This document shows, one piece after another, positions 23,401 through 56,965 of a stretch of 64,000 nt of DNA (positions within the stretch are counted from its first letter, which is position 1; each line of letters opens with the position of its first letter). The translations under genes were made by a program, and so were the position numbers. Location: positions 744,001-808,000 of the forward strand of contig OZ176060.1 in the NCBI GenBank assembly GCA_964247055.1. Reading direction: 5' to 3'. Under the pieces are notes generated by a model. That model had not been told where the DNA came from. It worked only from the letters and a program-made list of their open reading frames with translations, and did not search any database. The stretch is from Paragordius varius (Eukaryota > Animalia > Nematomorpha).

Positions 23401-24627
23401 ATTATAGTTTTTTATGTGATTTATTTCAAATAAACCTATATCGTCTGCCATTTAATTTTAGATATCGTCTGCCTGATATTCACAAGTTCATTTATAATTT
23501 CGTCTGTTTTAGTAAACAACTCGAAAATTTATAATCGTCTGCCTTCACTTTAAAATGAAATTTTAAATTGTCTGCTTATATAAATATAATTACGAGTTTT
23601 ATCGTCTGCTATACAAGATATATTATCGTCTGCTTTTTTATATATATAACTCGTGTCATCTACTTTTCTATTTAAATAATTATCGTCTGCTATATATCAG
23701 TAAACAAGATTATATAAAATCGTCTGCTAATTATTTTTATTAGCATCGTCTGACATACATCAACAAATATTCGTCTGCTTCTTTACATTTATAAAATATA
23801 TTAATCGTCTGCCTCTAATCTATAAATTTCTAGAATCTATCGTCTGTTTTTACACCTTAAATTAATTAAAGTATCCGTTGTATTCGTCTGCCGTAATAAA
23901 ATCGTCTGCTATAAAAATGTTTTTATTGTCTGCCCAAATTATTTGAACTGTAATCGTCTGCTGATTTGATTTTAAATTATTTTATTATCGTTTGCCCTAA
24001 ATTATTTTGGGCAATATTATATATTTTCGTCTGCAGATTTTAATTTGATCTACTAATCGTCTGCCGATCCCACAAATCATATTTATCGTCTGCTCTGTTT
24101 TAAACAAATTTTTATTATATCATCTGATTTTTAACAAAAAGTCTATATTATAAATCGTCTGCCGATATTTACACATAATTATCGAATCTTCTGCTTTAAA
24201 TATATATTTTATTTATATCGTCTGCTTTAAAATATTCAATTTCTATCGTCTGCTAAGTGTTACAAAGTCCGTATTTTTTAATCGTCTGCTCTTGATATAA
24301 TTAAATTTATTGATATAAAATCGTCTGCGGCTTTTAAAAATTAAATTTATTGATTGAATATCGTCTGCTGTTATAAAAATTAAATTTATTGATATAATAA
24401 TCGTTAAAAATTAAATTTATTGATATAATAATCGTCTGCTGTTATAAAATTTTACTTTATTGGTATAATCGTCTGCTGTTAAAATTTTAAATTTATTGAT
24501 ATAATAATAATCGTCTGCGTCTTTTAAAAAATTTATTGATATAATAATCGTCTGCTCCTGATATAAGATTTATATCGTCTGCTTCTGATATAAAATAAAT
24601 AATCGTCTGCTCTTCATATAATCGTCC
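20403..24627 (+). promoter_or_regulatory. Strand-polarised array of ATCGTCTGC(T) motifs upstream of cyclin A copy 1
   Basis: On the order of 100 exact or one-mismatch copies (by eye), essentially all on the + strand, about 30-45 bp apart with variable AT spacers. The last (degenerate) copy lies 12 bp before the ATG at 24640. A regulatory role is inferred from position only. Confidence 0.65.
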
Positions 24628-24639
24628 AAACAAAGCATT

Positions 24640-27600
24640 ATGGATGAAAATTGTTATACTACTACAAATAATGCCAATGTATTAAAAATGGCGTCGGCAA
24701 AAAACATGTGTTTTAATGATGAAACAGCGACATTAAAACACCTGATGGGAGGAAAATCAGCTGATATCGAAAACAGCTGTTTTGCTCAAAAAGGTGTTAA
24801 TAAAAAACGTAAAGCTCTCGGCGCCATAGATGTTAACATAAACAATGTTGCTAATAATAAAAGTTATGTAACTATCAATAAAAGTTATGTAACTATCAAT
24901 AAAAATTATGTAACTATTAATGATAAAGAAAATAATGTAATTAACAATGAAAATTATGTAACCAATAATGATATTAATGTAAGTATTAATGAAGAAAATT
25001 ATGTAATTAATAATGAAGAAAAATTTGTAGTTAAAAACCGCGAATTTAATAATGATAATTTTAATGTAACTAATAATAAAAGTTATGTAATTAATAATAA
25101 AAATTATGTAACTAATAATAAAAGTTGTGTGGCTAATAATGAAAATTATGTGGCTATTAATGAAGGAAATAATGTTAATATCTATAATGAAAATTATGTA
25201 ACTATTAATGATGAAGAAAATTATGTAACTAATAATGAAGGGAAACAGAACGATGTTAGTATTATGGATTATTCTTTTAATGAATCTACAGCAAAAACAG
25301 CTGAAAAAGTTTATTCACAAAAAAGTAATTCGGAATCAAAAACAGCTGATTTTATTGGACTTGGAACAGCTGATGAAGGGTTAATAAATAGTTTTGGGAG
25401 AAAAACATCTGTTGAAAGGTTAAGAAAAAGTTCTGAAGTAAAAACATCAGTTGAAAGGTTAATAAAAAATGTTGATCCAGAAACAGCTGTTACCAATTTT
25501 CCGAAAACAGCTGACTATTTAAATAATTATGATGCAAAAACAGCTGATGAAAAAGATTATAAACTATCTGATGGAAGTTTTAAACAAAAAACAGCTGATT
25601 ATTTCTTTAATAGTTCAGAGGAGGAAAAAAGTAGTTTTGAAATAATATCAACAGCTGTTAAGAATGCCGAAAAGTGTTTTGGAACATCTGATGAAAAATC
25701 GTCATCAGGTGTTTCAATGACAATCTGCGAATCAGGTGATGTGACAAAAGTTGAACCATCAGCTGACAAAAATGTCATGGATATAAAAAGTTTGTTTTAA
25801 TTTTTTTAAAAAAAATTTTATTAAATTATTTTATAATAAAAAAGATTTTTATAATAAATATTATTTTTTAATAAATATTATTTTTATTTTAAAAATATAT
25901 ATATATTAATAAAACTAAAATATTTGCTGATTTTTAATTTTTTAAATGATTAATTATTTATTTTTGGTTAATATATTTATTTAATAATTATATATTTTTC
26001 AAATAAAATAATTTAATATTAATTAGACAGCTGTTTAATATTATTATGAATTTAATTATTTTTCATAATTTTACGTTAAATTGTTTATTTTACATATAAT
26101 ATTTAGTAAAATTATTAAATAAAAAATATATATATTATATAAAAAAATAATTTTTAAATTAAACAAAAATTTTATTACAGCTGATTTAGAGTTTATATTT
26201 TTATCTCTTAATAAAAATTAATTTTTAAATTAATCAAATAATTATGCAATTAATATATTTTAATTTATTTATATATATATATATAGTTTTCAAAAATAAT
26301 TTTAATTTTACTAACAGCTGGTTTAGTGAATGGCCCCGAAGCAGACGAAAAGTGTTCGCTCGAGCAGACGGTAACTTTGCTCGATATGTTTTGTATGCCG
26401 GAATATGTTTTGGATATTTTTCAGTTTTTAAAGAATATTGAAGTAAAAATATAAAATATTTATAAACTTTTTTAAATATATTAATTTTTTAAATAAATTT
26501 AATAAAAATGATTAAATTAAATTTAATATAAATTATTATTTTATTAATATTCAAAAATATTTTTTTAATTTAAAATTATTTTTTTAAATTTTTAGAATGA
26601 ACTAAGACCCAAACCCACTTACATGAGTAAACAACCAGACATAAGTCACGTGATGAGAAGCACAGTCATTGATTGGTTGGTTGAAGTGTCAGCTGAGTAT
26701 AAATTCAGCTGTCGCACACTTTACTGTGCGGTCGATATGATTGATAGGTTGTTAGAATGTTTTAAAATATTTGATATTTTTATTTTAAAAATTAATTTTA
26801 AATTTTTTTAAATTATTTTTTTTATTTTAAATATAATTTTATAAAAAATTACAACAAATTTAAAAAATTAATTATTTTAATATTTTTGAAATTAGAAATA
26901 AATTTTCTATTTTTTTTTTATATTGTATTAATATAATCACAAAACAATATATGTTTTTAAATAATTTAAAATCAATAAAAATTATTTTAAATAATTTAAT
27001 ATTATTTAAATTTAAGAAAATATGTTTTATAATTATGAAGTTTAAAAAATGAAAAATGAAAAATATTATATTTTAAATCAGCTGTCGCACACTTTACTGT
27101 GCGATCGATATGATTGATAAGTTAGCATTTGGAAGTCAAATTATCCTTGAATATTATAAATTATATTCATTTTAAATATATATTTTTTTTAAAAAATTTA
27201 TTTATTAATATTTATAAATTTTTTAGAAATATTATATTTTTTATAATATGTATTTTAAATATTTTTAACAAATTTATAAAATTATATTTTTAATGATTTA
27301 ATAAAACTATTTTATTTAAAAAAATAAATAATAGTATTCAAAAAAATATATTATTGTTTTTAAATTTTTAAATAATTATTTTTTTGATTTTATTAATAGA
27401 CATTATAAATTAATTTTAATAAATTTGTTTATTAAATAAATTAATTATAGTATAAAAAAATAAATAAATTTTTTTATTATAATAATTTTTAAATAAAATA
27501 TTTTTTATAATTTTATATAAATTTTAAATTTAATTATTTTTTTAAGTTTATTTATTTATATTTGTAATTTTTTTTATTTTAGATTTTTATCACTAATGGC

Positions 27601-30060
27601 AGTTAGTCGGGGGAAATTACAGCTGTTGGCAACAAGCGCTCTATATATAGCGGCGTATTTATTTTTATTTAATTTATTTTTATTTTAAAAAAAATTTATA
27701 TTTTTTGTAAAAATATATAAAATAAAATTTAAATTTAATTTTTATTTATATGATAAAAAAATTAAATAAAATTATAAAATTTTTTAAAATAAAATTTACT
27801 TTTGATTTTAAATAATTTTTTATTATATTTTAATAAGATATTAAATTTTAAAAATTTATTATATTTATATTTTAATAAATTTAATATTTTTATTATATTA
27901 AAATAATTAAATTTTTTATCATAAAATAATATAATTTCATACATTTTTATAAATTATAAATATATTTTTTTAATAAATTTTTTTATTTTTAATAATAATT
28001 TTATTTTTCTAAAAAATTAAGAAATATAAATTTGAATATTTTAATAAATTTATTTTATTAATTATAATAAAATAAAAAAATTTACCAAAAATTTTTATAA
28101 ATAATTTATTTTACAATTTTAATTTTTTTTATAATTAAAGAAAAGATTATTTTTGTAAAATATTAATTATATATATTTATTTATTGAAAAATTAAATTAA
28201 AAATTTTAATTTTTCAAAAAATTCGAAGAATTTTACTCATCAGATATCAATTTTTTATATTCAAAAAATAATAATAACATCTAAAAAAATAATTAATTCC
28301 TAATAATTTTTAGGGAATTTCGAAATAATATATATAATATTTATAATATAATAAAATAATTTGTTTTATGTATTTTTTTTTAAAAAAAATTTAATTTTCT
28401 ACAAAATTCGAAGAAATATATAAAAAATTTTATATATTGATTTTAATATTTTTATAATTTTTTTTTTAATTTTTAATTTGTGATAAATAATATAAATGAT
28501 ATTTTTTAATTTTTGAAAGATATTTTAATTAAAATATTTTTTTATAATTTAAAATTTTTAAAAAAAAATATACTGAAAAATATAATAAAATTTTTTAAAA
28601 AATTTTAATTTTCTAGAAAATTCGAAGAAATTTACCCCCCTGATATAAATGAATTTGTTAATTTTAAATAAAAAATATTAAAATAAAATTTTTGTAATTT
28701 TTAAATTTTAGAGAAAATAAATTTATTTTTATTTTTAAATTAATAGACAAATTTAATTATTAATTTGTTTATTTTTTTAAATTTTTAAAGAATAAAATAA
28801 ATTTATTTTTATTTTTAAATCAAATAATTTTTTAATTCCCAAAAATATTTTCAATTTTTCTAGAAAATTCGAAGAAATATACCCGCCTGATATAAATGAA
28901 TTTGTTTACATAACTGACAACACATATTCACGCGAACATGTGATTAGGATGGAACAGCTGATTCTCAAAGTTTTACATTTCCGGGTTGGTACATCAGCTG
29001 TTACGAGTGACTGGTTAGATGCATGCGTGCGAATTATGTTTACAAACCAAAAATCAGGTAATCTAAGAAATTTGAAAGGATATTTATGTTAATAAATATT
29101 AAATTTAGACTTAAAATAATTATTTTTTTACTAAAAAAATATATTTTTTAAAATAATTTAAATAGTTCTCATAAATATATGTAATTTTTTTATATAAAAT
29201 TTATACAAACTATATAAATCTGGTTAAATGCATGCGTGCGAATGGTGTTTTGATAGAAATTTTAATTTTTAAATAAATTTAATTTTTTCAGAAAATCAAT
29301 ATAGAATATTTAAATATTTAGAAATATTTATTAAAAAATAATTTTATAAAAATATTATAAATGACAGGTTAGATGCATGCGTGCAAATTATGTTTACAAG
29401 CCAAAAATCAGGTGTTTTATAATTTAAAAAGATATTTAAAAATTTTGAGTTTTTAATAAAAAAATAATTGATTTAAATAAAAAATAAAATATTTAGTTGA
29501 AATTATTTTAAGTTATAAATATAAATTTTTTTAAGTAAATATTATTATAAAGAAGAACTGGTTAGATGCATGCGTGCGAATCATGTTAAAAATTAAAAAA
29601 TCAGGTGTTTTAAATAAGAAAATTTTATAAAGATATATTTGATTTTATAATAATAGAATTTGAAAAATATTTATTAAATCATTTTTAATAGTCCTCTAAT
29701 ATAATTTAATTTTAAAAGACTGGTTAGATGCATGCGTACAAATTATGTTTATAGGCCAAAATCAGGTGTTTTATGTTTTTCAAAAAAAATAATTTTTTAG
29801 ATATTAAATCGTTTTTGATAACAATCAAAAATATGTCTATTTTGTGAAAAAATTGAAATTTTTTTATTTTTCATAAATTCGATCCTATCTGATTTTAAAT
29901 TCGAAATAAAAAAAATGTGTAATGACTAGATGCATGCGTGCGAATTTAGTTTAACAGGCAAAAATCAGGTGTTTATGATTGTTATTTTTATTCATTCATT
30001 CATTTATCAGGTGATGGCAAGTTGACAGCTGTTCAAAGGAAAGTACACTATTTAGCAAAA
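24640..30060 (+). CDS. CycA: Cyclin A, copy 1; exons 1-6 only (3'-truncated by duplication breakpoint, possibly the 5' half of a chimera)
   Basis: Exons 24640-25789, 26318-26442, 26596-26747, 27583-27654, 28864-29057, 30011-30060 (581 codons, open). D-box-like [10 protein letters not shown]. Cyclin box [30 protein letters not shown]...[39 protein letters not shown]...MEQLILKVL. Exons 7-10 of the second copy are absent downstream. Confidence 0.85.
27077..29975 (+). repeat. Intronic reiterations of cyclin A exon ends with splice sites (copy 1)
   Basis: Exon 3 end plus donor at about 27077. Exon 5 acceptor plus 5' end at about 28219, 28403 and 28612. Exon 5 3' end at about 29219, 29362, 29557, 29718 and 29923 (gactggttagatgcatgcgtgcgaattatgtttac...aaaaatcag|gtg), most retaining the donor. 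Confidence 0.85.
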
Positions 30061-30812
30061 GTATCAAATAATTGTTTTATAAAATTAATATATTTTAATC
30101 ATCTGTTTTAAATATTTTTTTATTTAAAATAATATATTTTATTAAAACAATATAAATATTTTTTTTATTAATTGTAATTTTTCATAAATAAAAACTAAAC
30201 ATCTGGTTCATATTTATGAATCACCTGTTTTTATTGTAAGAAATCATGAGCAACAGCTGATCACAAGATTTTATGGTGATTTGTCAGTTATATTAAAGGA
30301 AAAAAATTAAGATTTCCGTAAAATTTAAAAACAGCTGTTTTTTTAAAAAATACAACATTATGTTTATTTTATATTTTTAGGTATTAAAAATTATAAATAT
30401 ATATATTTACATATATTATCAATATTATAATTAAATATATATGAAAAATAAAAAAATTATTAAATTAAAAAATTTAATATTTGTTTATTAAACAAATATA
30501 ATTTAATATTTTCAAATTATATTATCAATATATAAAGTTACTTATTTTTTAATTTAAAATTATTAAACATATATTTTACTAAAATAAATAAATATATATA
30601 AATATTTTTTTAACCATTAAAAGTAAATTATATTAATTATATATTTTTAAAATAAAATTATCTTATAAAAATTATTTTTCAAAAAATTATATTTAATAAT
30701 TAACAAATAAATAATTTTCAAATTATATATATTCTATTAATAATATATAAATATATTTTTAGATTATTATCAAAATAAAAAATATATCAATTTATTCTTA
30801 TATTTATCATAG

Positions 30813-33800
30813 AAACCATTATCATCTGATGGAAACGTGAAATCAGGTGATCTGCCTCCTTTTTCGCACACATTCATCCCATCAGCTGCTGTCGACTTTA
30901 GAAAATTTCAAACAGCTGTTCCAACTAATAATATTGGAAATAATAATAATTTTCAAATTCCTACTGATTATGATTTTGGTATTTATTTTATTTTTTCATA
31001 AAACAGCTGTTTTTATTAAATTTTCAAAAACAGCTTTTATATTTATTAATATTTTGTTATATATATTTATTAAATATTTTGTTAAAATTTTTTTGTTTTA
31101 TTAAAAATTATTTTTTGAAAATAAAATACTGAAAAGCAGCTGTTTTATAAAAAGATTCAAATAAAACAGCTGTGTTATTAAATTTTAAAAATCAGCCGTT
31201 TTCAGACATTAAAATGTATATATTATATTTTAATTTTTTTAAAATAAATTTAAAAACAGCTGTTTATGTATATTTATTATTATGTTAAGATTTTATATAT
31301 ATTATTTAATATTATATTTAAATTTTTTAAAATAAAATATAATTTAAAAACAGCTGTTTTTAATAAAATTCAATAAGTAATGATAATTTTCAAATTCCTA
31401 CTGATTATAATTTTGGTATTTATTTTATTTTTTTCATAAAACAGCTGATTTTCAATTGAAATATTTTTTAATGCCTAAAACAGCTGTTTTTAGATGGATA
31501 TATATTTTAATTATTTTTACAAAACAAAATTTTTATATAATATACGTATAATTTAATTTTTTTATATATCCTAATTATATATATTTAATAATTTTATTTA
31601 AATTTTTTAAAAATAAAATGCATTTTGAAAACAGCTGTTTTTCTAAAAAATGATAATTTTTAAATTCCTACTGATTATTTTTTTAAATAAAACAGCTGAT
31701 GTTTTATTTAAATTTTTTATCCAAATATTTAAAATGGTATTTTATGTCTATTTAAATAAAAAAATATTTATTAAATTTTAAAATAATTATTTTTCAATGA
31801 TAAATCATATATTTTTCATTGAAATATAATAATTTAATTTTATATAAGATAAATAATTTTAGGAATTTAGTAAATAATAATATTTTTTTAAAATAAATTA
31901 TGCGATAAAAACAGCTGATTATTAATTAAATTTTTTTATTTTAAAATAATTTATAAATTCTTTAATAAGAATGTAATAGATATTTTTTAATAAAATAAAT
32001 AATTTTATAAAAAAAACCTGATTTATAAAATTTATAAATTTTTTTAATTTAAATTTATTATAAAATAAAATAATTATATTTATAAAATTTTATATTTAAT
32101 AATATAAATTAATTTATTTTTTTATTATAAAAAAACAGCTGATTTATAAAAAAAATTAATTTAATTTTTTTATTTGATAGAAGAAATAATATATTTTTTT
32201 AAAAAAAAAATTATTTTATAATAAAAATAATTTATTTGATAATAAAAGTAATTTAAAAAAACAGTTAATTTTTATTAATTTTTTTAAATTATTTTTAATA
32301 AATACTAATTTTTTTTAAATAATTTATTTTTTTTAAAAAAACAGCTGATTAATAGTTATTTTATAATAAAAATTAATTATTTATATTATGAAAATAAATA
32401 ATTTATTTAAAATTTAATATTTTTTAATTTTTTTTATTATTTTTTATATTTGTATTTAAAATTTAATATTTTTTTATTTTTTTTGTTTTTTTATTCATAA
32501 AAATTATTAATTAATATATTTGATTTTTAATTTAAATTTAATATTTTTTAAATTAAAAAATTCAATATTTTATTTTTTATTAATTTTTTAAATTATTTAA
32601 TTATTATTTTTATTTTTAATACTTTTAATTATATTATTTAAATTTTAATATTTTTATTTTTTTAAAAAATAAAAAAATAAAATATTTTTTTTTCTAAAAA
32701 TATATTTTTAGATTATCCAAATTTTATTGATCATATTGGAGGTTCTCACTTTCAATCCACGAGGTTTTTTATTTTATTAAATTTATTCTATTTGAAATAA
32801 ATTATTTTAATTTAAAATAAAAAAATATTAATTTTTATTAATAAATATATTTAATTTAAAGAGTTTTTGTAATTTCATTAAATTATAATTTTTTATAGTC
32901 ATAATAAAAAAATATTTAATGAGTATTTTTAATTGTTATCAATTATATTATAAGAAATAAAGAGATTATAAAATGAAATTAATTATATTAATTAAATTAT
33001 AAATAAATTATAATTAAAATTTAAATAGATATTTTAAAAATAATTTTATTTGAAAAAACATATTTTAATTTACATATATTAATTTTTATAAAAATTAATA
33101 TTGATTAATAAAATTAAATTTATAATTATTTTCTCACCTCTATTTTTGTTTATTTGTTTATTTAATTTTAAGTTTTTGTATTTTAAATAAATTGTTTATT
33201 TTTTAGTAAAATTAAAATTATATATTTTAATTTTATAAAAAAATTTTTTTTAAAATATTAATTCAATTTTTTCATGAGTATTTATTTTTTTTGATAATTT
33301 ACATATTTTTATTTAAAAAACATATGAAATATAAATTTATAAAAATTTAATTTTTCTTATTAAAATATTTTATTTTTTTTTTTTAACTTAATTATATTTT
33401 TACATTATAAAAATAATTATATTTTTTTAATTTTAATAATACTTTTTTATTATTACAAATATAAATATTTTAAAAATATTTAATAAAATATTTTTATTAT
33501 TTTTGAAAATTTAATTTATAATAATTTAAATATTTTTTATTTTTTTGTTTTAAAAATGTTTTTTTAAAAAAATTATAAAAAAATTATTAAAATTATTTTA
33601 TTAATTAAAATATTTTTTTTTAATTTATATTTTAAATAAAAAATAAAATTTAGAAATTTTTAATAATTTAATTTTAAAAAATTATAAAAAAATTATTTTT
33701 ATTAAAAAATTATTTTTATTATAAAATATTTTTTTATAAAATTTTAAAATTAATTAATAAAATATTTAAAAAATAATTAAAAATATTTTTTTAAAAATTA

Positions 33801-34198
33801 TTAAAAAATAAATTTTTTTAATAAAATAATTTTTTAGATTTGAAACTCAGAAACCGTTCTTACCTGATTTATTATTGCCAAGATCAGCTGTTCCCCTAAC
33901 TGCAAAAAGTGTGAAAAGGTGATTTTAAATTAAATTTATTAAAAAATTTTAATTTATTTAATTTAATTTAATATTTTAATTTTTTTTAAATTAATATTTT
34001 AATTTAATTAAATAATATAATTTTTATATTAAATATTTATTAAAAATTTATAAAAATTATTTTAATATTTATTTAAAATTAAATGTATATATATACATAT
34101 ATATTTATAGTATTTAATAAATTTTATAAATATATATGTAAAATTAATTAAATAATATAATAATTTTCAAAAAATATTATTTTTTATTAAAATTAAAT

Positions 34199-34253
<55 letters not shown>

Positions 34254-37000
34254 AAATTAAATATTTAAAAAAATTTATATAATTTTTTAAAATTTATTTA
34301 AAATTAAATATTTAATAAATTAAATAAAAATTTATTGAAATTAAATAAAAATTTATTGAAATTAAATAATATAATTGATAAAATAATAATTTTTTAAATA
34401 TTTATTTTTAATAAAAAAATAATTTTTTATGAAAATTTATTTTTTAAAAAATATTATATAATAAATATTTATTATTTTTTCTTATATGTATATTATAAAA
34501 TTAAATAATTTAATTAAATGAATATATAATTTTTTTAAAAATATTTATTTTCATAAATTTTTATTTTTTTAATATTAAAATTTTTATAAAAAATATAATT
34601 TTTTAAAAAATACTAAAATTCATATTTTAATATATAAAAAAAATATTATCACTATAAATAAAAATATTTTTTAAATTTTAATATTATATTATAAAATTAT
34701 ATTTAATTAAATTAATTAATTTATATAAAATAATTTAAAAATATAAAATGATATATTTTTTAACTATATATAAATTATTATATTTAAAATATTGAAAAAA
34801 AAATATTAAAATTAATTTATTTTTTAATTTTTTATATATATAATTTTTATTTATTTTTTTAATTTTAATTTAATTTAAATTAAATTTAAATTTTAAATAT
34901 GAAATTATATTGAAGATATAATTAATTTTATATAAAAAATTATAATTATATAATAAGAAAATTATTAAAAATATAATATATTTTAAATAATTTTAAAATA
35001 AATTTAAATAAAATAATTAAATAAATTTTAAAAAATTAATATTTTACTTTTTTTAAATTATTTTTTTTTAAATTTTATAACTTTTTAATTTTTATTTATA
35101 TAAATTATTTTTATATTTTAAAATAATTTAATATTTTGAAAATTTTAATTTTTTTAAATTTATTAAATTTTATTAAATAAATTAATTATTTAAATTTAAA
35201 ATAAAATAATTTTCGTTTAATGTTTCAACATTTTTTATATTTAGAATAATTTTTTAAATAATTTTAAAAATTTCAAAATAAAATATTTAAATTTTAAAAA
35301 AAAATATTTTTATAACTTTTTTTAATTTTTAATTTTTATTTATTTTTTTAGAATAACCGCCCCCTTTAGATGTCAAATATTTACGACAACACCTGTTCGC
35401 CCAATCAGCTGTTTAATTTAATATTTTTAATTTTTTAAAATATTTTAATTTAAATTATTTTATATATATTTTAAAATATAAAATATTAAAAACATAAAAA
35501 TATATATTTTTAATAATATAGAAATATATTTGTTTTTAAAAAAATATATTTATTTTATTATTTTACAAAAATGTTTTTTTTTAAATAATATATTTTTTAA
35601 AATGATATACACATCTTAAAAATAATTTATATTATTAAAAAATATATATAAAAAAATATTTTATTTAATTTTAAATTTATTTTTTTTTTTAAATTTGATT
35701 ATTTATGGAATTTAAATAATTTAATATATATATAGTTTAAATAAATTTAAAATATTTTTATTTTCATATTTTTTAATAATTTATTAATTTTAAAATATAT
35801 ATATTATAATATTTTGAAATAATATTAATTTATTATATAAATAAATTTTAAAAATCTATAAATTATGTTATATATTTTATTAAATTATTTTTTTTTCTCC
35901 AAATTTTAAATTTATTTAATTTAAAAGTAATTTTTTATTTTTTAATTTTAATAAAATATAAAAAAATTAGTTTTTAATAAATTTTTTTAATAAATAATAT
36001 AATAATTTATTTTATTATTTATTTTTTTTGAAAATATTTTAATTTAAAAAATATTTTATTTTTTTAGTATTTTCTAGAAGAACTTTGCCATCTATACCAG
36101 GTTTTTATTTTTTTTTATTTTTTTAATTTTTTTAATTTTTTTATTTTTTTTTATTTTTATTTAAAATAAATTAAATAAATTATATTTTTTATATTTTTTT
36201 GTATTTTTATTTATTTTTTTTTTTAAAAAAAATTTATTTATTTTAATTATTATTTATTATTCAAATAAATTAAATAAATTATATTTTTTATATTTATTTA
36301 ATTTTTTTTATTTTTTTATTTTTTTTATTTTTTTTTTATTTTTTATTTTTTTTATTTATATTTTTATTTTTTTTAATTTTTTATATTTTTTAATTTTTTT
36401 GTATTTTTATGTATTTTTTTCATGTTTTTAATTTTTTGTAAATATATTTATAAATATATATAATTTTTTCAGATACTTTTTTATATATTCTTATTAATTT
36501 TATTAAATTAAAATTTATTTAATATTTTTTAAATATTTGTTTTTTTTATTTTTAATTATAAATTTATTTTATTTTAATCTATTTATATAATATTTTTTAT
36601 GTAAAAATTATTTTAAATTTTTATAATTTTAAAATATTTATATTAATTTATTTTAAGTTTTAATTTTTATTAATAATATAAAATAAATTCTAAAAATTTA
36701 AATTAATTTATATTTTTATTAATATTAATTAAGTTTTATATATTTTTATATATTAATTTAATTAAATAATATAATTAATAAAAATTTAATATTAATAAAT
36801 TTTTAAAATTTGAATTTAAAATAAAAATTTTATTATTTAAAATCAGCTGTTAGATTAGGAACAGCTGGTTTTGAAAGTTCAAGAAGTTCGGTTATTTTTA
36901 CACGTGCTCGATTTACAGGTAAAAATAAAAATATTTTAAAAAAAATATTTTTAAATTTTTTTATTTAAAGTATATTTTATATTAAAATAAAAATATTTTA

Positions 37001-37048
<48 letters not shown>

Positions 37049-40000
37049 TATAATTTTTAATAATTAAAAAAATATTAGAAAAAATAAAAAAATAATAAAA
37101 AAAAAAAAATAAAAAAAATATTTAAAAAAATCATATTTAAAAATTAAAAATTTACCAAAAATTATATAAATATATTTTAAGAATTAAAAAATTGAAATAA
37201 AAATTAAAAAAGATATATTATATATAATATTAAAAAGAATTAAATTGTTTTTTATTTATATAAATGAATAAATTTAATAATTTTATTAAAAAAAATTATT
37301 TATTAAATATAGTTTAATAATTTTTATAAATATAATTTTTTTTATTCAATACATTAAGTATATAAATAAATATAATTTATTTATATTAAAAAAATTAAAA
37401 TAAAATAAATTTCAAATCAATATATTATTAAAAAATATAAATTAAATAAATATTATTTAATTTTGTAAAAATTTCTAAATTATTTTTTTAAAAAAATATT
37501 TTTTTTTAATATTTTATTATTAAATAATTATATATAATAATTTAAATGAAATTTATACAATTAAATAAATATAAAATATTTAATAAAAAAATTTTTTATA
37601 AAATATTTAATAAAAATTTTTTTTAATATTTTTTATTTAAAGCGCCACCTTTTGTTCCACGAACGCCCAGGCTTTCGCCTATTACCATTAATTCTGGTAA
37701 ATTAATTTTTTTTAAATTTTTTAAAAAGTATATATTTTTTTTTAAATGTTAAAAAAAATTATATTTTATTAATTTTAATTAATTAATATTAAAAAAAAAA
37801 TTATTTTATAAAATATAAATTTTAATTTATTTAAAATATATAATATTTTTTATATATTTTCTAAAAAAAAATTTTTATTTTTTTTAAATTTTTTTTATTT
37901 TTAATAAATTAATATTATGTTTTTCTTTTTTTTTCATTTTAAAAACATTAAAAAAATTTAATATATAATATATTATATATTTTTATTATAAATATTTTTA
38001 TATATTAATTTAAAAATATTTTTTATGTTTAATTTTTTAAAATATATAATACTAAAATAATAACTTATAAATTTTTTTAAATTATTTTAATATTTCATTA
38101 CATTCTTTATTTTTTAACTTTTAAATTTATATTTATATAAAATATTTATAAAATATAATATTAAAAAACATTAAAAAATTTTTAAAAAATATATTATATT
38201 ATTTTTTACTTTTTTATTTTTTTCAAAAATTATTATATTTATTATATTAAATTTTTAAAAAATAATGAATATTTATTTTTTAATTTTTAAATTTAAATCT
38301 TTATAATATAACCAAAAAAATTAAATTTAATTAAATATAATTGTTTAATTATTATATATTTAAATAGCAATTTTATTTAAATAATTTTATATATTTTATT
38401 TTTGAAATTTTTTTATTTTTTTTAATTTTTTATTATTATTAATTTATATATATAATATGTATATATTTAATTTCAAATTTTTTATATTTTAAATTTTTTA
38501 ATATTTTTTTAATTTTTTAATTGTTCTATATTTTATTATAATTTTTTTAAAATTATTAAATATTTTTTTTATTAAACATTTTTAGTTCCCCCAATAATAA
38601 GAACACCATCAGCTGTTAAGCCACCTGGTTTACCTCGAGGTAAAAAATATTAATAAAAAATAATTTTTTTATTTTTTTAAATATTTTTTTTATTTGAAAA
38701 ATTAAATAAATTTTTATTATTTGGTTTTTTATAAAATATTTATAAAAAATTAATAAATTTATTAAAATATTTTTGATAAATTTTCTGAAACATTAATTTT
38801 TAATTAAAAAAAAATAAAAAAATTTTTATAAAATTATTTTATTTTATTTTTTATTTATTTTAAATAAAACATTTAATTATTTTAATATTTTATAATATAT
38901 TATATTAAAATTAATAATTTTATTAAAATATTTTTGATAAATTTTCTGAAAAATTAATTTTTAATTAAAAAAAATAAAAATTTTTTTATAAAATTATAAT
39001 TTTTTATAAAAAAATTTAATAAATTTTTTTTTAATAATTTTTATATTTTACATTTAATTTATAAAATATTAAAAGAATATTAAATATTTATTAATATATT
39101 TTTAATTTTATTATTTTTATAAAATTAATTTTTTAAGTAAAAAAAATAAAAAAAAAATTTTTTATTAAAAATTTAATAAATTTTATTTTATTTTTATTAT
39201 TTTTAATTTCTAAAATATTTTAAAAAAATAAATTTAACAAAATATTTTTATTAAAAATTATACTTTTTATTTTTTAATATAAAATTATATTTTAAAAAAA
39301 TTTTATTATTTTTTATTCTTTTATTTTAATAATAATTAAAAATATTCGTTATTTTAAAATTTTTTTTTGTTATTTTTCTATTTATTTACATTTTAAATAT
39401 TTTTTTAATTTTGATTTTTTAAATAATATAAAATAAAAAATAATTTTTTCAGAATTTAATTTATTATTTATTTTTTTAACCTAATTTATTTGATTTACAA
39501 CAAATTACATTAGTATTAAAAAATTAATAAAATTAAATTTTATTAAAAACAAAATAATTTTTTTTATTTTTTTATTAAAAAAAATAATTTTAATTTTTTA
39601 TAAAAATACATAATATTAATTTTAGAAAAATGAAGAAATAAAAAAATTTTATTTTTTTAACAATAACAAATAATTTATTTTATTAATATTTTAAATTTTA
39701 AATTTTTTTTAGAAAATAATTTTTTTGAAATTATATATATAAAAATTAATTATGTATAAAATAAATTTTTAAAAAAATTTCTTATTTTATTTTTTTTAAA
39801 AAAATAATAATATTTTTTATTAAAAATATAAAATAATTATTTTTTATTTTTTTTTATTTAAAAATAATTAAAATAATTAAATTATTTTTTTATAGATTAT
39901 TTATTTTTTAAAAAAATAAATTTTATATTTTATGAAATTAATTATTTAATTTAATTTATTATAATTTTAATTTATATTTATTATATAGTTTTAAAAAAAT

Positions 40001-43000
40001 TAAAAATAATTTTTTAATTTTTTTAAAATTTATAAATATAAAATTAACTTTATTTAAATAATTAATATTTTAATATATAATTTTAATTTTTTATGAAAAA
40101 AAATAATTATTTTTTTTTTATTTTTTTTTATTTTTTTAATTTTTTTAATTTTTTTTGTTTTTATTTTTATGATTTTTTAATAAAAATTGAAAAATAAACT
40201 AAATTTAATAAAAATAAATAATTAATAATAATAATTATTTTATTTTTTAATTATATATACATTTTATTATTTTATTTAAATTATTTTTTTTATAATATTA
40301 AAAAAAAATTTATATATATATATATTTTATATATATATCTATATATATCAAAATAAATATGTGAAAATATATTTATTTAAATTTTTAAATAATTTAAAAT
40401 AAAAATTATTTAAATTATTCTTATAAATTAAATTTTTAAATTATTATGAAAAAATATATTTTATAAATATTTAAATAAAAATATTTAAAAATTATATAAA
40501 TATATAAAAAAATAATAAAATATGAATTAAAAATTAAATATATTTATTAAAATTATTAAATATTTATATAATATATATAAATATATATTTTTAAAATTTA
40601 TTAAAATATATTAAAATAAAAATTATATATTATAAAATAAAGAAAATAATATTTAATTATTAAATTTATAAAATATTTAATTATTTAGAATTTATAAAAA
40701 ATAAAAAACATTTAAAATTATATATATTAAAAATAAAAATTAAAATATAAATTACAAAAGCTATGTTATAATATAATATTAAAAAAGAATAAAATTGTTT
40801 TTTATTTTATGAATAAATTAAATATTAAAAAAAAATATTTATTTAAAATACTTTTAAATTTTAAATAAATTTAAATTCTTTTTATTTTTCAATATATTAA
40901 ATATATAAATCAATATAATTTATTTATATTAAAAAAATTATAATAAATTAATATTTAATTTTAAATCAATATATTATTAAAAAATATAAATAAAATAAAA
41001 ATATTATTTAATTTTGTAAAAATTTTAAAATTATTTTTTTATAAAAAAATATTTTTTTGTAATATTTTATTTTTTGATTAATTTAAAATTTTTAATATCA
41101 TATTGAAATACATATTTTAATAAATAAATATAAAATATTTAATAAAATTTTTTTCACAAAAATAAATATTTTTTTAATATTTTTATTATAAAGCGCCACC
41201 TTTTGTTCCACGAACGCCCAGGATTACGCCTATTACCATTAATTCTGGTAAAAAAAAAATTAAATTTTAATTAATTAATTTTTTAATTTTTTAAATTAAT
41301 TTTTTTAAAAATATAAATAAATTTATATTTTATTAATTTTTGAAAATTAAAAAATTAATTTTTTTTAATTTACTTAAAATATATAATTTTTAAATATTTT
41401 GTTTATTAATAATATTATAAAAACATTAAAAAAAATTTAAAACAATATATTATATTATTTTTTACTTTTTTTATTTTAAATATTTTTATAGATTAAAAAA
41501 ATAATATTTTATTTAAAATATTTTTTATGTAATTTTATTTTTTTAATATATATAATACTAAAATAATAACTTATAAATTTTTTTTAAAAAATGATATATT
41601 TTTTACATTTTTTATTTTTTTTAAATTATTTAATATTTTTAATTTTTTTAAATAAATTTATATTTTTCTAAAATATTTTTTAATTATAATATTTTTTAAA
41701 TAAATTTATATTTTTTCAAATATTTATTTAAAATTATTAATTTTTTAAATTTAAATAATGATATATATTTAAAATTTTATTAATTTTAATTTATGATTTT
41801 TTTAGTTCCTCCAATAATAAGAACTCCATCAGCTGTTCAGCCACCTGGTTTACCTCGAGGTAAAAAATATTTATAAAAAATATATTTTTTATTTTTTTTT
41901 TATTTTTTATTTAAAAAAATTAAATAATATTTTTTATTTTAATAAAATTATTATTTTAATTAAAAAATTAATTTTTTAATTAAAATATTTTTAGTTAATA
42001 TTTTTTATTCAAAAAAAATAAAAAGAAAATTAAATATTTATTAATATATTTTTAATTTATTTTATTAATTTTACAAAATTACTTTTTCATTAAAAAAATA
42101 TGAAAATTAATGAATTTATTAAAACATTTTTAATTAAAAATTAATTTTTAATTAAAAAAAAAATTAAATTTTTATAATTTTTTCTATTTTTTATATAAAA
42201 TTATAAATATTTTAAAAAATTGTTTAATTTTTTATTTTATTATTTTAATAAAAAGATTCGTTTATTTTAAATTTTTTTTGTTTGTAATTTCTACTTATTT
42301 ACATTTTTTAGTATTTTTTTATTTTAATTTATTTAAAAAATAATTTTTATTTTTATTTAGTTTTTTCATTTGTTTATATTTTAATTTAATTTAAAACAAA
42401 ACTTACATTTGTATTTGAAAATTAATAATTTTATTTATTAACAAATAAAAATTTTCTCTTTTTTTATTTTGTTAAAAATTAAAAATAAATTTTTTTATAT
42501 TTTTATTTATTAAAAAAAGGTATTTTTTTAAAAAATAATTTTTTTTAAATTATATATATAAAAATTAATTATGTATAAAATAACATTTTTTGTTAAATTA
42601 ATATAATCTTTTATTATTTTAATTTATAAAAAAAATTAAAATAATAATTTAAGAAAAAAATATAAATTATTTTTTAAATTATTTTATATTATTTTCTATT
42701 TTAAAAATATTATTAGTTAAAAAATAATAATTAAATTAAATTTGTTTTTTATTAAAATTAAAATAATTTCATAATTTATATTTATCTTTTTATTTTTATT
42801 TGATTATTTGGTTTTTTTTAGTTTTTTATATAAAATAAAAATAAATGATTATTTTTTAAAATAAAAATAATTTATATTTTTTTTAATTTTATTATTTTTT
42901 ATTTCTTTTATTATTTAAAAATTATTTTTTTTTTTAAATTTTTTAGTTTTTGTTCAATATTTTTTAATTAATATATATATATTTTTTAACAAATTAAAAT

Positions 43001-46000
43001 ATCTTTATTAAATTTTTAATTTTTAAATATTTTTTAAAAATCTAAAATAATTATTTTTTAATTTTTATTTTTAAAAGATTAAAAATATAAAAATAAATTT
43101 TTTTAATTTTTTTTAATTTTTTAATATTTATATTTAATTTTAGATTTTTTTTAATTATTTATAATTTTTTATAAAATTAAAAATTTTTAAAAATACATAA
43201 ATTAAATTTTTTTAAAATTTAAAAAAAATAAAATAATTATATTTAAATTTTTTTTTTATTTTTTTAATAAAAATTAATATTTTATAGAAATAATTTTTTT
43301 TTAATATTTTTTTTTTTATTTTTTTTAATTAATAAATAATTTTTTTATTAAAAACAAAAATAATTTTTTTTTATTTATTAATTTTTTTTTTTAATTTTTT
43401 TTATTTTATTTATTTTTTTTAAATTTTTTTTTAGTTTTTGTCCCAATGAGCATAATGGCAATGAATATGGATGAATGGCAATGCGAATTCGATGTAAATT
43501 ATTTTTTATTAAATCAGCTGTTTTTTATAAAAGAAATATTTTTTTTTAAAAAAAATTTTAAAATAAAAATATTTATTTTTATATAAAAAGATAGTTTTAT
43601 TAAAAAATAATTAATTTGGAATCTAATATGAAATATTTAGAATTAAAAATATATATTTTAAAATTTAAATAATTTTAAAATTTTATAAATAAATATAAAT
43701 ATTAAATTTTTATAAATATTTAAATATTTATTTAATTAGAATATTTATTTAATTATTTTATTTAATATTTTAAATTTTTATTTAAAAAAACAGCTGTTTT
43801 TATAAATATAAAAAAATATTTTAATTTATTTAAATATTTATAAATAAATCAATTATTAAAATAATAAAAAAGTTGTTTTTTAATGAAAATTATAAAAAAA
43901 TATAAATGTAATATAATTTTTCAATATTTAAATTAAAGTATTTTCAAATAATATATGTATATAATAATTTTTTAAAATAAAATTTTATAAAAATTATAAA
44001 TTAAATAATTTAATTATTTAAATATTTTCCTAAACAGCTGTTTTTTAATTTTCCACTAGAGTATGAAAATAAATGCAAACAGGAAAGAAATAAATTTTGA
44101 ATGCAAATCAGCTGTTTTTAATAAAAAAAAAATTAAAAAAAAAATTTTAAATTTATTTAAATATAATAATAAAAATAATTAAATTTTTATAAATTTATTA
44201 ATTAATTAAAAATTTTAATTATTTTTTTAAATATTTTTAAATAACTGTATTTTAAACTAAATAATTAAATTTTTAGTATTTTTAAAAATATTTTTAAAAT
44301 TATTTAATTTATATATTAATTTTAATTTTATTTTATTTTTTCAAAAAATATTTTTAAAAATCAGCTGTTTTTTTAAAAAATAAAATTTCCACTAGAGTAT
44401 GAAAATAAATGCAAACAGGAAAGAAATAAATTTTGAATGCAAAACAGCTGATGGAATATATCCTGTGCCTGGAAAGAATTGTGTTTGGTAAAATAAATTT
44501 ATAAAAAAATTTTATAAAAAAATTTAATAAAATATTTTTATAAATAAAATATTATTAATTTATAATCTTTAAAAATATTTTAAATAATTTAAAATATTTA
44601 AAAAAATTAAAAAATAATTTTATAAAATACATTTTTTTGAAAAAAAATATTTTAATTTAAAAATTTTATTAATTAAATTATTAATCTTTTTTTTATAAAT
44701 TATTATTTATTTTTTTAAAAAAAATCAATTTATAAATAAATAAATTTTAAATATATTTTCTAAAATATTTTTATAAAAAAAGATTTTAAATTATTTAATA
44801 TTATTTTCATATTTTTGTAAAAATTAAAAAAATTTTTTATAAAAATTTATTATTTTTCATATATTATTTATTTATATTTATAAAAATTATTTAGAATAAA
44901 TTATAAAAAATTTATATAAAGATATTAATTTAATTAATATTAAAATATTTTTTTATAAAAAAAAAATTAATTAAAAATAAAAAAAAAATATTATATTTAA
45001 ATTATTTAAATAGTTTTAAAAAATAATTTCTTAGAAAATTATTTAAAATTATTTCTAAAATAAATTATTTTTTATAAAAAAAAATAAAAATTTTATTTTT
45101 GTTTTAATTTTTAAATAAAATAATTTTAAATTAAATATATTTATTATAAAAAAACATTTTTAAAAATTTCTTAATAAAATATAATAAATAAAAATAATAT
45201 TTTTTAATTATTTAATTGATAAATCAATTTAAATGGATTTATTTTATTTAAATTTTTTAATATTTGCTAAAAAAAATAATTTTTTAAAAATAAAAATTAA
45301 TTTATTTTTAAATAAATATTTATTAAAATTAATTTTTAAAAATTTTTTTTAATAATTGTTGAATTAAAATTATTTTTGAAAAAATATTCCATTTTTTTAT
45401 TAATTTTTAATTATTTATATAATTAAAATATAAAAAAATTAAATAATTTTGTAAAATATTAATTTTAAAAATATTTTTATGTAATTTTTTTTAAATAAAA
45501 TTAAAAAATTAAAAAAAATTTTTTTTAAAAAAAATATTATTGTAAAATATAAAAAAAATAAAAAAATTAAAAAAAAATTTTTTTAAAAAAATATAAAAAT
45601 ACTAATTTTTTTATTTTTAAAAAAATTATTTTATTTAAATTTATATATTTTTAATAATAATTAAATTATTTAATTAAAATTAGAAAAAATAGAAATTAAA
45701 AAAATATTTGAATTTATTTTATATAATAAATAAAAATAAATAATTAACTAAATATATATTTTTTATATAATAAATAAAAAATTTTTAATTAAATTTAAAT
45801 TAATAATTTTTTTTAAAATATTTTAAATAAAAATTATTTTAAAAAAAATTATTTTTTTATTTTTTTTTAAAAATAAATAAATTTTTTTTATTTATTTTAT
45901 AAAAAAATAAAATAAAATATTCTAAATTATTTTTTATAAAAATAATAATTTATTAAAAGAGATTTTTTTTAAAAAAATTTAATTTTTAGAATAAAAAATA

Positions 46001-46614
46001 AAAATTTTATATTTTTTATATAAATTAATTATTTAAATAATTTTTTTTGATAAATTCAATTAATTTAATTAAAAACTATTATTAAATATTTAAAATAAAA
46101 ACTTAAATTTAAATAAAATAATTATTTTATGTTTAAAATATTATTTAAAAATATTTTAAAAAAAAATTATTTTAAAAAAATATTATTTAAAAATAATTTT
46201 TTTTATTTTTTTATTTTTTAAAATTATTTATTTTTTTAATTTATTTATAAATATTTTTTTATTTTTAAATTAATTAATTTATTTTTAAAATATATTTTAA
46301 AAAAAAATATTTATTAAAAAATATTTTTATTTATTTTTATTTATAAAAAATTATTTATTTATAAATATATTAAATTTAAATATTTATTAAAAAATTTTTT
46401 TTAAAAAAAATATTTTTTTTATAAATAATTTTTATAAAAAAAATTTAAAATAATTATTTAATTTATTTTTTTTTAATTTATATTTTATTTTCTTGTAAGG
46501 TATGTTGCCTGTTCCAATTTCTATGCTTGGTTCATGTGTTGTCCACATGGAACACTTTTTGATGTTCGGTCAAACATTTGCGAAACAGCTGATAAAATAA
46601 CATGTGATTATTGA
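30813..46614 (+). CDS. Pro/Ser/Thr-rich chitin-binding (CBM14) protein, copy C; lacks one exon, has two exons duplicated; no start of its own found
   Basis: Exons 30813-30978, 32712-32763, 33838-33918, 35352-35410, 36068-36100, 36847-36918, 37643-37696, 38586-38639, 41194-41247, 41806-41859, 43435-43493, 44396-44487, 46500-46614. 945 nt, open, 314 aa plus stop, same six-Cys domain. No frameshifts or stops relative to copy B. Confidence 0.85.
34202..34246. repeat. (TA)n microsatellite
   Basis: About 22 TA units. Similar tracts at about 19645-19672, 37006-37044, 48360-48393 and 56923-56960. Confidence 0.9.
44035..44114 (+). repeat. Truncated duplicate of the acceptor and 5' part of the penultimate chitin exon (copy C)
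   Basis: cagctgttttttaattttccactag|agtatgaaaataaatgcaaacaggaaagaaataaattttgaatgcaaatcagctg, then AT filler. The full exon follows at 44396. Confidence 0.85.
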
Positions 46615-46749
46615 TTGGAAAAAAACGTTTTTATTGAAATAAATATTTTTAATAAATTTTTAATAAATATATAAATAATAAATTTGAAAATTTTCTATAT
46701 TCATATTTTTATTGATTATTCTAGAAATATAAATATTTATTAAAAAAAT

Positions 46750-46897
46750 TGCGAAACGGCTGATAAAATAACATGTAATTATTGAAAACAGCTGTTATAA
46801 TTGAAATAAAAATTTTGAATGAATAATAAATTCTTAATAAATTAAATAAAATTTTAAAAATATATAGATATATATTTAATATATTATTTTATTAATA

Positions 46898-46947
<50 letters not shown>

Positions 46948-48355
46948 TTAATATTTTTAATTTATTATATATATATAAATATATATTTTATATATATATT
47001 TGTATTTTATTAATAAATATTTTTCTTAAAATTAAAAAAATTTAAAAATAAATTAAGAAACAGTTGATTAAATGTAGTTATTGATTGAAAAATAGCTGTT
47101 ATAATTGAAATAAATATTTTGAATAAATTTATTAATATATATATATGAATTAAAATAATATATATATATATATAATTAATATAATTTATACATATATATA
47201 TATATAATTAATATAATTTATACATATATATATATATATATATATATATTAGTAAATTTAAGATATTTTTAGTTTTTATTAAAAAAATTAAAAAAAAATT
47301 TGCGAAAGAGCTGATAAAATAACATGTGATTATTGAAAACAGCTGTGATAATTGAAATAAATATTTTGAATAAATTTTGAATATATTTTGAAAAATTTTA
47401 TATTTATATATATGAATTTATTATAATATTAATTTTTTATTTTATATTTTTTGATTTTTCTAATATAAAGATTTAAAATAATTTGTGAAACTGCTGATAA
47501 AATAACATGTGATTACTGAACAGCTGTTATGATTGAAAATTTGAAATTAATTTATTAATATTTTTATAAATTTTTATAATATATTTATATATAATTTTAA
47601 AATAATTTTAAAATAATTAATATTAAATATTTATATATATATATGTATATTAGTGATTTTTCTATATTTATATTTGTAATGATTTGAAAAGTAAATTTTA
47701 AAAATATGAAACAGCTGATAAAATAACATGTGTTTATTAAACAGCTGTTATAATTGAAATTGAAATAAATTTATTAATAATATATATAATTAATTATGTA
47801 TGAATTAATTCATATAATAATATATTTATAATTTTTAAAAATTTTCCTGCAATAAATATTTTGGAAAACAAAAAAATAATTAAAAAACAGCTGATAAAAT
47901 AAAATGTGATTATTACACAGCTGTTATAACTGAAATTGAAATACATTTATTAATTATATAATTTTTATAATAATAAATATATTTTTAATCTTTTATTTTA
48001 TTAATAAATATTTTTATTAAAATTAAAAATTTTTTATTTAATTTGCGAAACTGATTAAACAACATGCGATTATTGAACAGCTGATATTATTGAAATAAAT
48101 ATTTTTCATAAATTAATTAATAATTATTTATGTTATATAATTTATAAATATATTTAATATTGAATATATATATATATATATATATGTTATTCTATTTGAA
48201 AAATAATAATAAATATTATATATATATTTGATAAAATTAAAAAAATTGTAAAAAAAATTTGCGTGATAAAATAACATGTGATTACTGAACAGCTGATTGA
48301 AAATTTGAAAAAAATTTATTAATAATTTTTAATAAATTTTTAAAATATATAATTT

Positions 48356-48397
<42 letters not shown>

Positions 48398-48424
48398 AAT
48401 ATTTTATTTTATTAATAAAATACT

Positions 48425-48455
<31 letters not shown>

Positions 48456-49020
48456 TTATTAATATTTTATTATTTTAATTTTTATGATTTTTCCTAAAAC
48501 TAAAAATATTAAAGAAAATTAAAGTAACAGCTGATAAAATATGTTATTGATTGGAAAACAGATGTTTTTTTTGAATTATATAAATTTATTAATAAAATTT
48601 TTTTTAAATTTTTAATAATATAATTTATATAATTAATTTTCAAAAATTATTATCAAAAAAATTTAAAAAAGTTTTGCGAAACAGCTGATAAGATTTGATT
48701 ACTGATTGGAAAAATTGATGTTTTTAAAAAATTCGAATAAATATATTCAAACTTTTTTAATAATTTTATAATAATTTTATAATTATAGATAAATTTATTA
48801 ATATTATTATATTTAATAAAAATACCTTGAATATTAAATATAAATTTTAGAAAAAATTTAAACATTATTAATTAAACAGCTGAAAAAATAACGTATTGTT
48901 AATGAACGGAAAACAGATGTTTTTATTGATGAATATATATATTATTACCAAAAAAAATATTAAAAAACAGATGATAAAATAACATATGATTTTTGATTAA
49001 AACAGCTGTTTTTTAATTAT
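46750..49020 (+). repeat. More than 10 reiterations of the chitin-gene terminal exon end (copy C), decaying distally
   Basis: gcgaaacagctgataaaataacatgtgattattga...cagctgtt variants at about 46750, 47056, 47301, 47484, 47706, 47885, 48044, 48260, 48526, 48674 and 48965. Confidence 0.85.
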
Positions 49021-50395: not shown

Positions 50396-50429
<34 letters not shown>

Positions 50430-50832
50430 TATATTTATTAGAATAAAATAATTTAAATTATTAAAAAAAAATAAAATAAAATCAAAACATTTTGTTTTTA
50501 AAAAATAAAATTTATTATATATTTATTAAAAGTTTATTAAATATCAATTATATAAAAATATATAAAAATAAATTAAATATATAATTATTTAAAATAAAAT
50601 TATAAAGGTTTTTTAAAAAAAATTAGTTTAAAATAAAATTATAAAAAAAATAAAATATAATAAATTATATATTTGATACTTGCAATTGAATTTTTATTTT
50701 TAATACAGCATTATTAAATAATAATAAAAAATAAATAAAAATATTATTTAATAATATTATTTATAAAATAAATAAAATTTAAAAATAAGAATTATTCAAA
50801 ATATTTTTGAAAATAATAAAAATACAAATAAA

Positions 50833-56911: not shown

Positions 56912-56965
<54 letters not shown>

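Follow-up and report, generated by a model that had tools for sequence, protein, structure and literature searches.

What is made from a gene that a tandem duplication has cut in two, and whose open end now faces the exons of another gene? The question is raised by a 64,000-nucleotide stretch of the genome of the nematomorph Paragordius varius (assembly GCA_964247055.1, contig OZ176060.1, positions 744,001 to 808,000 of the forward strand; hereafter the window, in whose coordinates positions are given). A copy of a cyclin A gene (c1) breaks off there within its sixth intron and is followed, on the same strand, by the 3' part of a chitin-binding gene (block C). An earlier note on this DNA had proposed that c1 exon 6 is spliced across the junction into block C to encode a chimeric protein, and had named as the alternative a truncated cyclin lacking its C-terminal fold. 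All of its statements about the sequence were reproduced here, and the alternative was found to fit slightly better than the fusion. Our tentative answer, to which we give a probability of roughly 0.45, is that c1 is a truncated cyclin A that is still in use.

Structure and truncation of the first cyclin A copy

The first copy consists of six exons between 24640 and 30060, which together form 1743 nt (581 codons) without a stop; all borders are AG/GT and the ten internal splice sites are intact. Its parts are as follows.

20403 to 24602, plus strand: unidirectional array of 55 exact ATCGTCTGC motifs, ending 38 bases upstream of the c1 start codon
24640 to 25789, plus strand: c1 exon 1, with the start codon, a D-box-like motif and Asn-rich repeats; ends in phase 1
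26318 to 26442, plus strand: c1 exon 2
26596 to 26747, plus strand: c1 exon 3, in which the N-terminal cyclin box begins (MRSTVIDW)
27583 to 27654, plus strand: c1 exon 4
28864 to 29057, plus strand: c1 exon 5 (KFEEIYPP...), in which the N-terminal cyclin box ends
30011 to 30060, plus strand: c1 exon 6, the final cyclin exon of c1, ending ...HYLAK with the phase-0 donor AAA/GTATCA

Exons 3 and 5 match the Pfam model Cyclin_N (E 2.3e-15 at model positions 13-64 and E 1.3e-11 at positions 87-126, respectively), and their best matches in the PDB are cyclin A2 chains (E 2e-11 and 4e-14), with chains of cyclins B1 and E1 at 1e-9, about four orders weaker for exon 5. Together with the D-box-like motif and the Asn-rich repeats of exon 1, these matches bear out the earlier description of a D-box, repeats and a complete N-terminal cyclin box (MRSTVIDW, KFEE). 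A word search with the protein of exon 1 (383 amino acids) gave no matches, and a search for contigs encoding its open frame found nothing on record.

The C-terminal fold is largely missing, as c1 reaches only about position 27 of the Cyclin_C model, which has 119 positions. That this copy stops after exon 6 (...HYLAK, phase 0, 30060) had been recognized before, and beyond its six intact exons we found no further cyclin exon. A second copy further along the window is complete.

55008 to 62353, plus strand: cyclin A copy 2 (c2), full length, with exons 1-6 at 55008-56160, 56716-56840, 57711-57862, 58586-58657, 59313-59506 and 59906-59955
60579 to 60692, about 61678 to 61790, about 62279 to 62350 and perhaps 63354 to 63405, plus strand: c2 exons absent from c1 (borders approximate)

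Exon 7 of c2 matches Cyclin_C at positions 28-63, and the C-terminal fold was found both in c2 and in a third cyclin A copy, which lies on another contig (C10); against PDB sequences, c2 exon 7 gave no match, the query being too short. Across the 110.6 Mb assembly exon 5 occurs three times and exon 7 twice, and no exon 7 for c1, and with it no Cyclin_C fold, was found anywhere in it. Since both copies of exon 7 belong to the other two cyclin genes, the truncation of c1 is real within the assembly.

The junction and the origin of the duplication

The window is very AT-rich (12% G+C), and exons stand out in it as short islands richer in G+C with canonical AG/GT borders. The order of elements on the contig of the window (C11) is block A, block B, motif array, c1, block C, second motif array and c2, and the tandem duplication appears as a pairing of 4379-30169 with 30560-60066. 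Block A, part of a chitin-binding gene, has its stop at 219, its first exon (e1) 10241 bases upstream of the window start and many more exons further upstream, and partial exon copies form an array at 810-4040, ahead of e1 of block B. Around the junction the following features can be told apart.

4633 to 17002, plus strand: chitin block B (e1-e11), with e1 at 4633 and the stop at 17002, and no 5' end of its own
30061 to 30196, plus strand: what is left of cyclin intron 6; reading through into it adds 16 codons up to a stop at 30109, and AATAAA lies at 30187
30197 to 30208, no strand: duplication breakpoint, about 12 bases that cannot be assigned to either side
30209 to 30369, plus strand: dead partial copy, the last one, of the chitin gene's preceding exon ('exon 21' type), frame-shifted and without a usable acceptor

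The homology between the sixth introns of c1 and c2 can be followed to about 30196 (with 97% identity between 30157-30194 and 60131-60168, over 38 bases), and from about 30209 the sequence is homologous to the intron that precedes e1 in block A (30208-30369 is 91% identical, over 163 bases, to a stretch 10949-10790 bases before the window). The earlier placing of the breakpoint at about 30195 was thus off by no more than about 10 bases. Each of the two breakpoints falls inside a gene, and the two genes share a strand, the arrangement expected of a junction chimera. The stretch 30208-30369 was also considered as a hidden first exon of block C and rejected, as it is a frame-shifted dead exon copy without a usable acceptor, and its ATGs run into stops.

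Contig C10 (3375001-3445000) carries the entire locus once more, in diverged form and over more than 60 kb; it is arranged there as A'-B'-cyclin, with a chitin gene of blocks A' and B' and a full-length cyclin A, and with neither a truncated cyclin nor a third block. Between the two loci exons are 92-100% identical, and low-complexity intron DNA can barely be aligned. The synonymous distances are 0.128 for c1-c2, 0.129 for c1-C10 and 0.185 for c2-C10; as the first two are alike, the duplication is about as old as the split between C10 and C11. The ancestral order would then have been A-B-cyclin, as still seen on C10, and a duplication of about 26 kb, with one breakpoint in the intron before e1 of the chitin-binding gene (in block B) and the other in cyclin A intron 6, would yield exactly A-B-c1/C-c2. 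Where its ends meet, such an event would place c1, a 5' piece of the cyclin gene, ahead of a 3' piece of the chitin-binding gene, block C, whose probable source is block B; an internal duplication of 3.2 kb, bringing two in-frame exons, would have been acquired by block C later. Duplication and truncation clearly exceed what chance would produce.

Probable constraint on the cyclin box and a possible truncated product

Whether c1 is still kept by selection was judged solely from silent versus replacing changes. Intron divergence (about 70% identity) is an unsafe neutral yardstick, since some intron stretches shared by blocks C and B are 90-94% identical; low-complexity intron DNA, to judge from these alignments, simply evolves faster. 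Over exons 2-6 (198 codons) c1 and c2 differ by 16 synonymous and 6 non-synonymous changes (pS 0.128, pN 0.013). From LEQTV onward, about 185 amino acids, the two proteins are identical, and the cyclin box is without any amino-acid change while synonymous changes are present in it. Changes private to c1 number three silent and two replacing in exons 2-6, with both replacing ones ahead of the box; exon 1, as far as it can be aligned, has 10 silent and 25 replacing ones, so that along this branch the cyclin box has changed about six times less often than exon 1. When neutral evolution was simulated with about 56 substitutions, the length of the c1 branch, the 1743-nt frame stayed open in 6% of runs (uniform) or 1% (AT-biased), figures that count substitutions only and leave indels aside. 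The promoter-side array is likewise still there: exact copies of ATCGTCTGC number 55 before c1, 48 before c2 and 45 before the C10 copy, with none elsewhere in the window. Taken together, the open frame, the unchanged box and the motif array point to a gene that is still read, with the reservation that the counts are small.

On the reading that we prefer, c1 would still be transcribed and translated, with its cyclin box held by selection, and, less securely, its main product may be a C-terminally truncated cyclin A of about 581 amino acids plus a short tail. In such a protein the D-box region, the MRAIL-type patch and the complete N-terminal cyclin fold would be preserved, and about three quarters of the C-terminal fold would be gone. 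Its 3' end could arise by read-through into the intron remnant, with the 16 extra codons, or by use of a nearer cryptic acceptor; the AG at 30239-30240, which had been suggested for this role, does add KS and then a stop. The truncated protein could bind a cyclin-dependent kinase (CDK) or partners with an RxL motif without forming a normal, active cyclin-CDK pair. Block C would most likely be a slowly eroding relic, or be used in some other way, and an in-frame cyclin::CBM14 mRNA may be present as a minor form.

Several points weigh against this reading. The counts on the c1 branch are small, and the cyclin box taken alone (two replacing changes of five) differs from neutrality at P ~0.07. An appearance of constraint could also come from gene conversion between the three cyclin copies, and a protein left with just a quarter of the C-terminal cyclin fold may not be stable. 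A 5' fragment with a live donor ahead of exons on the same strand commonly splices into them, and chimeras at tandem-duplication junctions are often expressed (PMC5460883). The splice-site scores used below come from simple weight matrices built from 52-54 paralog splice sites, c1 and block C excluded, and these discriminate poorly, with nine decoys scoring at least 9 in the 12 introns of block C; moreover, 17 of 72 inferred acceptors have another AG at most 52 bases upstream.

Some features of the cyclin copies stand apart from this question. The N-terminal 380-430 amino acids of all three (24640-25789, 55008-56160 and exon 1 of the C10 copy) consist of Asn-rich repeats of the NNENYVT type with many indels. 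The ratios of replacing to silent change in exon 1 are 1.75-3.7 in the three copies, which is near neutral, and the conserved parts of this exon are its first 70 amino acids, with the D-box-like motif, and its last 60. The branch of c1 is the shortest of the three, with 5 private changes in 594 nt compared with 14 in each of the others, which is unexpected for a fragment (P ~0.06, on small counts).

Dead relics as a rival reading

The rival that survives best, which we nevertheless regard as unlikely, is that c1 and block C are both non-functional leftovers, still intact because little time has passed or because working copies have converted them. Loss is the usual fate of partial duplicates (PMC5460883), the donor of c1 exon 6 has drifted to GTATCA, and the substitutions of block C look neutral, with three of its acceptors eroded (see below). 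Exon similarity among the five chitin blocks is mosaic, a pattern that suggests conversion. The c1 branch is oddly short (5 changes in exons 2-6 against 14 in each of the other two). What speaks against dead relics is, first, the synonymous difference of about 13% between c1 and c2, which, with strongly diverged introns and no long identical tracts, indicates that conversion has not been recent. Second, a relic would not be expected to change some six times more rarely in the cyclin box than in exon 1, or to have a frame that neutrality leaves open in 1-6% of runs even before indels are considered. Finally, the upstream motif array is fully retained.

Block C and the proposed in-frame fusion

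Next in rank, and also improbable, is the chimera, in which c1 exon 6 would be spliced to e1 of block C and a cyclin A::Pro-rich spacer::CBM14 protein of 895 amino acids would be the main translated product. Its 3' half would be supplied by the following exons.

30813 to 30978, plus strand: block C e1 (KPLSSD...); its phase-0 acceptor, TCATAG, is weaker than those of the other four e1 paralogs
32712-32763, 33838-33918, 35352-35410, 36068-36100, 36847-36918, 37643-37696 and 38586-38639, plus strand: block C e2-e8, the Pro-rich spacer
41194-41247 and 41806-41859, plus strand: extra in-frame exons e7b and e8b, from an internal tandem duplication of about 3.2 kb in block C only
43435-43493, 44396-44487 and 46500-46614 (with the stop), plus strand: block C e9, e10 and e11, the CBM14 module

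Block C thus has 13 exons between 30813 and 46614, with AG/GT borders throughout, and encodes 314 amino acids in 945 nt including the stop. The local duplication (36990-43100), which block C alone carries, contributes two 54-nt exons, or 36 extra Pro-rich residues. Both of its copies are B-like, and the idea that block C is itself a fusion of an A-type and a B-type block was rejected on that ground. The CBM14 module earlier noted in this copy is confirmed by a Pfam CBM_14 match in the last exon, which covers positions 18-53 of the 53-position model and lies above the cut-off of 22.1 bits (24 bits, E 4e-5); e10 encodes the initial third of the domain. An exhaustive protein search with e1 (55 amino acids) returned two spurious bacterial repeat proteins only; neither a native partner of e1 nor a protein derived from a transcript came up, and no relatives of this exon were detectable outside the genome.

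Much of the structure is what a chimera would need. The phase-0 donor at 30060 and the phase-0 acceptor at 30813 join into the uninterrupted frame of 2688 nt including the stop that had been reported, which we recovered from the exon models (1743 + 945 nt, 581 + 314 = 895 amino acids). The intervening intron of 752 nt would be typical of the gene, and all 13 exons of block C keep their AG/GT borders and their frame. As the earlier note had said, block C lacks a start codon: what separates e1 from the breakpoint is the dead partial exon copy, and no 5' exon lies there. These points carry less weight than they first appear to. Both halves are open by descent, so the long frame needs merely a phase-0/phase-0 match, a chance of one in three, and the exon type repeated in the arrays, to which e1 is natively joined, likewise ends in phase 0; the frame, in other words, permits a fusion and does not argue for one. 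Nor does the intact frame of block C carry weight, since in neutral simulations at its level of private change it stays open in 40-75% of runs. The private substitutions of block C, two silent and five replacing, look neutral, while those of B, A10 and B10 together are 16 silent and 10 replacing.

The splice signals lean mildly against an in-frame fusion, a lean and not a verdict given the matrices from which it comes. The c1 exon 6 donor, GTATCA, scores -2.0 (3.2 and 2.9 in its two paralogs), the lowest of all donors scored, and the e1 acceptor of block C, TCATAG, scores 5.4 (7.1-9.8 in the other four blocks); the acceptors of e8 and e11 in block C are also much weaker than their paralogs. 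The fusion would therefore pair the weakest donor with the weakest e1 acceptor, across two better-scoring acceptor-like sites that are specific to block C and absent from block A.

30379 to 30382, plus strand: C-specific acceptor-like site TTTTTAG/GTATTA (AG directly followed by GT), at 30381; score 6.5-9.6; from exon 6 it gives 17 codons and a stop
30756 to 30762, plus strand: C-specific acceptor-like site TTTTTAG, at 30763, 50 bases before e1; score 9.0-9.3; its use changes the frame, and 25 codons are read before a stop

Having another AG at a distance of 50 bases upstream is in itself not unusual among real acceptors here. The first of the two sites is of some interest in its own right. 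At 30370-30390 a T-rich tract leads into AG and, with no base between, GTATTA; this back-to-back pair of acceptor and donor is specific to block C, and splicing exon 6 to 30381 would restore the very donor that exon 6 has in the C10 cyclin (AAA/GTATTA); the arrangement resembles a recursive splice site and may be due to chance.

Two further observations speak against the chimera as the main product. A six-cysteine CBM14 (peritrophin-A) module is expected to need the secretory pathway for folding, and the N-terminus of the fusion, MDENCYTT..., has no hydrophobic leader or signal peptide, as judged by eye, that could take a disulfide-bonded extracellular module there. In sequencing runs marked as RNA under the same species label, almost none of the words sampled from 24600-31000 occur. 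Structurally the locus agrees with the proposed chimera (breakpoints inside genes on the same strand, the promoter side and start codon in the 5' partner, a 3' partner without a start, and compatible phases), while the splice signals, the neutral changes of block C and the missing signal peptide lean away from it. That an in-frame cyclin A::CBM14 fusion is really made and has been kept by selection, as an old gene under the cyclin motif-array promoter, appears very doubtful.

Long-range splicing and mis-assembly as improbable readings

It is highly improbable that c1 exon 6 is spliced to c2 exon 7 (60579) over about 30.5 kb, with c1 and c2 serving as alternative front halves and c1 making a full-length cyclin A. 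The phases are identical by descent, and such splicing would explain why the cyclin box of c1 is kept as well as in the full-length copies. Transcription, however, would have to pass a terminal exon with polyadenylation signals and the promoter-side array of c2, 19 compatible exons would have to be skipped, and introns in these genes measure 0.15-3.3 kb. A mis-join at 30197-30208 that disguises a complete c1 is the least probable explanation of all, given that c1 is a distinct, diverged copy and not a collapsed or doubled c2, that the two exon 7 copies of the 110.6 Mb assembly both sit on the other cyclin copies, that each side of the junction has a clear homolog right up to the 12-base gap, and that 85-95% of the words sampled from 24600-31000 occur in four DNA runs, which come from two samples.

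Comparison with known systems

Tandem duplications with breakpoints in two genes create chimeric genes (PMC5460883), as the earlier note had taken to be established; the survey in Drosophila yakuba counted 76 chimeric genes among 1116 tandem duplications, 24 of them with raised expression (PMC5460883). The present locus resembles those junction chimeras in having breakpoints within genes on the same strand, in placing the promoter and 5' exons of the downstream gene ahead of the 3' exons of the upstream gene, and in having compatible phases. Unlike those, which segregate as polymorphisms, it is old, with a synonymous divergence of about 0.13, and it is known from genome sequence alone. It also departs from typical junction chimeras, of which Sdic and jingwei are classic examples, in that its halves come from different compartments, a nuclear or cytosolic cyclin and a secreted chitin-binding module. 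The locus belongs among the tandem-duplication junction cases, with unusual partners and an unusual age.

As to the cyclin half, c1 shares with A-type cyclins (human cyclin A2, e.g. 1FIN and 7B5L) the Cyclin_N domain, an MRAIL-type patch (MRSTV), KFEEIYPP and a D-box-like motif, and differs from them in lacking most of the second cyclin fold and in having 380 N-terminal amino acids that are Asn-rich and near-neutral. A natural parallel for the truncated product is cyclin D1b, a C-terminally altered isoform that arises by intron read-through, through alternative processing of one gene, and keeps both cyclin folds. Leaving the last used intron of c1 unspliced would similarly give a short novel tail and changed regulation; unlike in cyclin D1b, the loss in c1 is genomic and removes most of the second fold. 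On the other side of the junction, e9-e11 of block C encode a CBM_14 domain with its cysteine pattern after a Pro-rich spacer, as in peritrophin-A/CBM14 proteins, whereas blocks C, B and B10 have no start codon or signal peptide of their own.

Textbooks describe the partial duplicates that form at the junctions of tandem duplications as a source of new genes; most such duplicates are young and soon lost. The first cyclin copy has outlasted about 13% of synonymous divergence and still has an open frame of 581 codons, an unchanged cyclin box and the full motif array. Should the truncated cyclin be expressed, it would offer a natural test of what a lone N-terminal cyclin fold can do, whether as a decoy for CDK or RxL partners or as a competitor of substrates of the anaphase-promoting complex/cyclosome (APC/C). 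If the fusion is true, a cyclin degradation signal, a substrate-docking patch and a CDK-binding fold would be joined to a Pro-rich spacer and a chitin-binding module; if c1 and block C are simply relics, the locus is an ordinary one. In addition, the locus provides a handle on the ATCGTCTGC arrays, which are found upstream of all three cyclin A copies.

Related chitin-binding blocks

Blocks B (810-17002 of the window, counting the array of partial exon copies) and B10 (32183-50534 of the joined C10 stretch) each consist of e1-e11 with a stop, and have neither a start codon, nor a signal peptide, nor an upstream exon with an acceptor; the array copies ahead of them lack acceptors as well. B and B10 are probably reached by splicing from the upstream exons of gene A, as alternative 3' cassettes. 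Block C could in principle be reached from the exons of gene A in the same way, from c1, or not at all. The private changes of B and B10 together are 12 silent and 8 replacing, and the blocks are intact at both loci, which suggests that such tandem 3' blocks have a use as interchangeable ends of one upstream gene.

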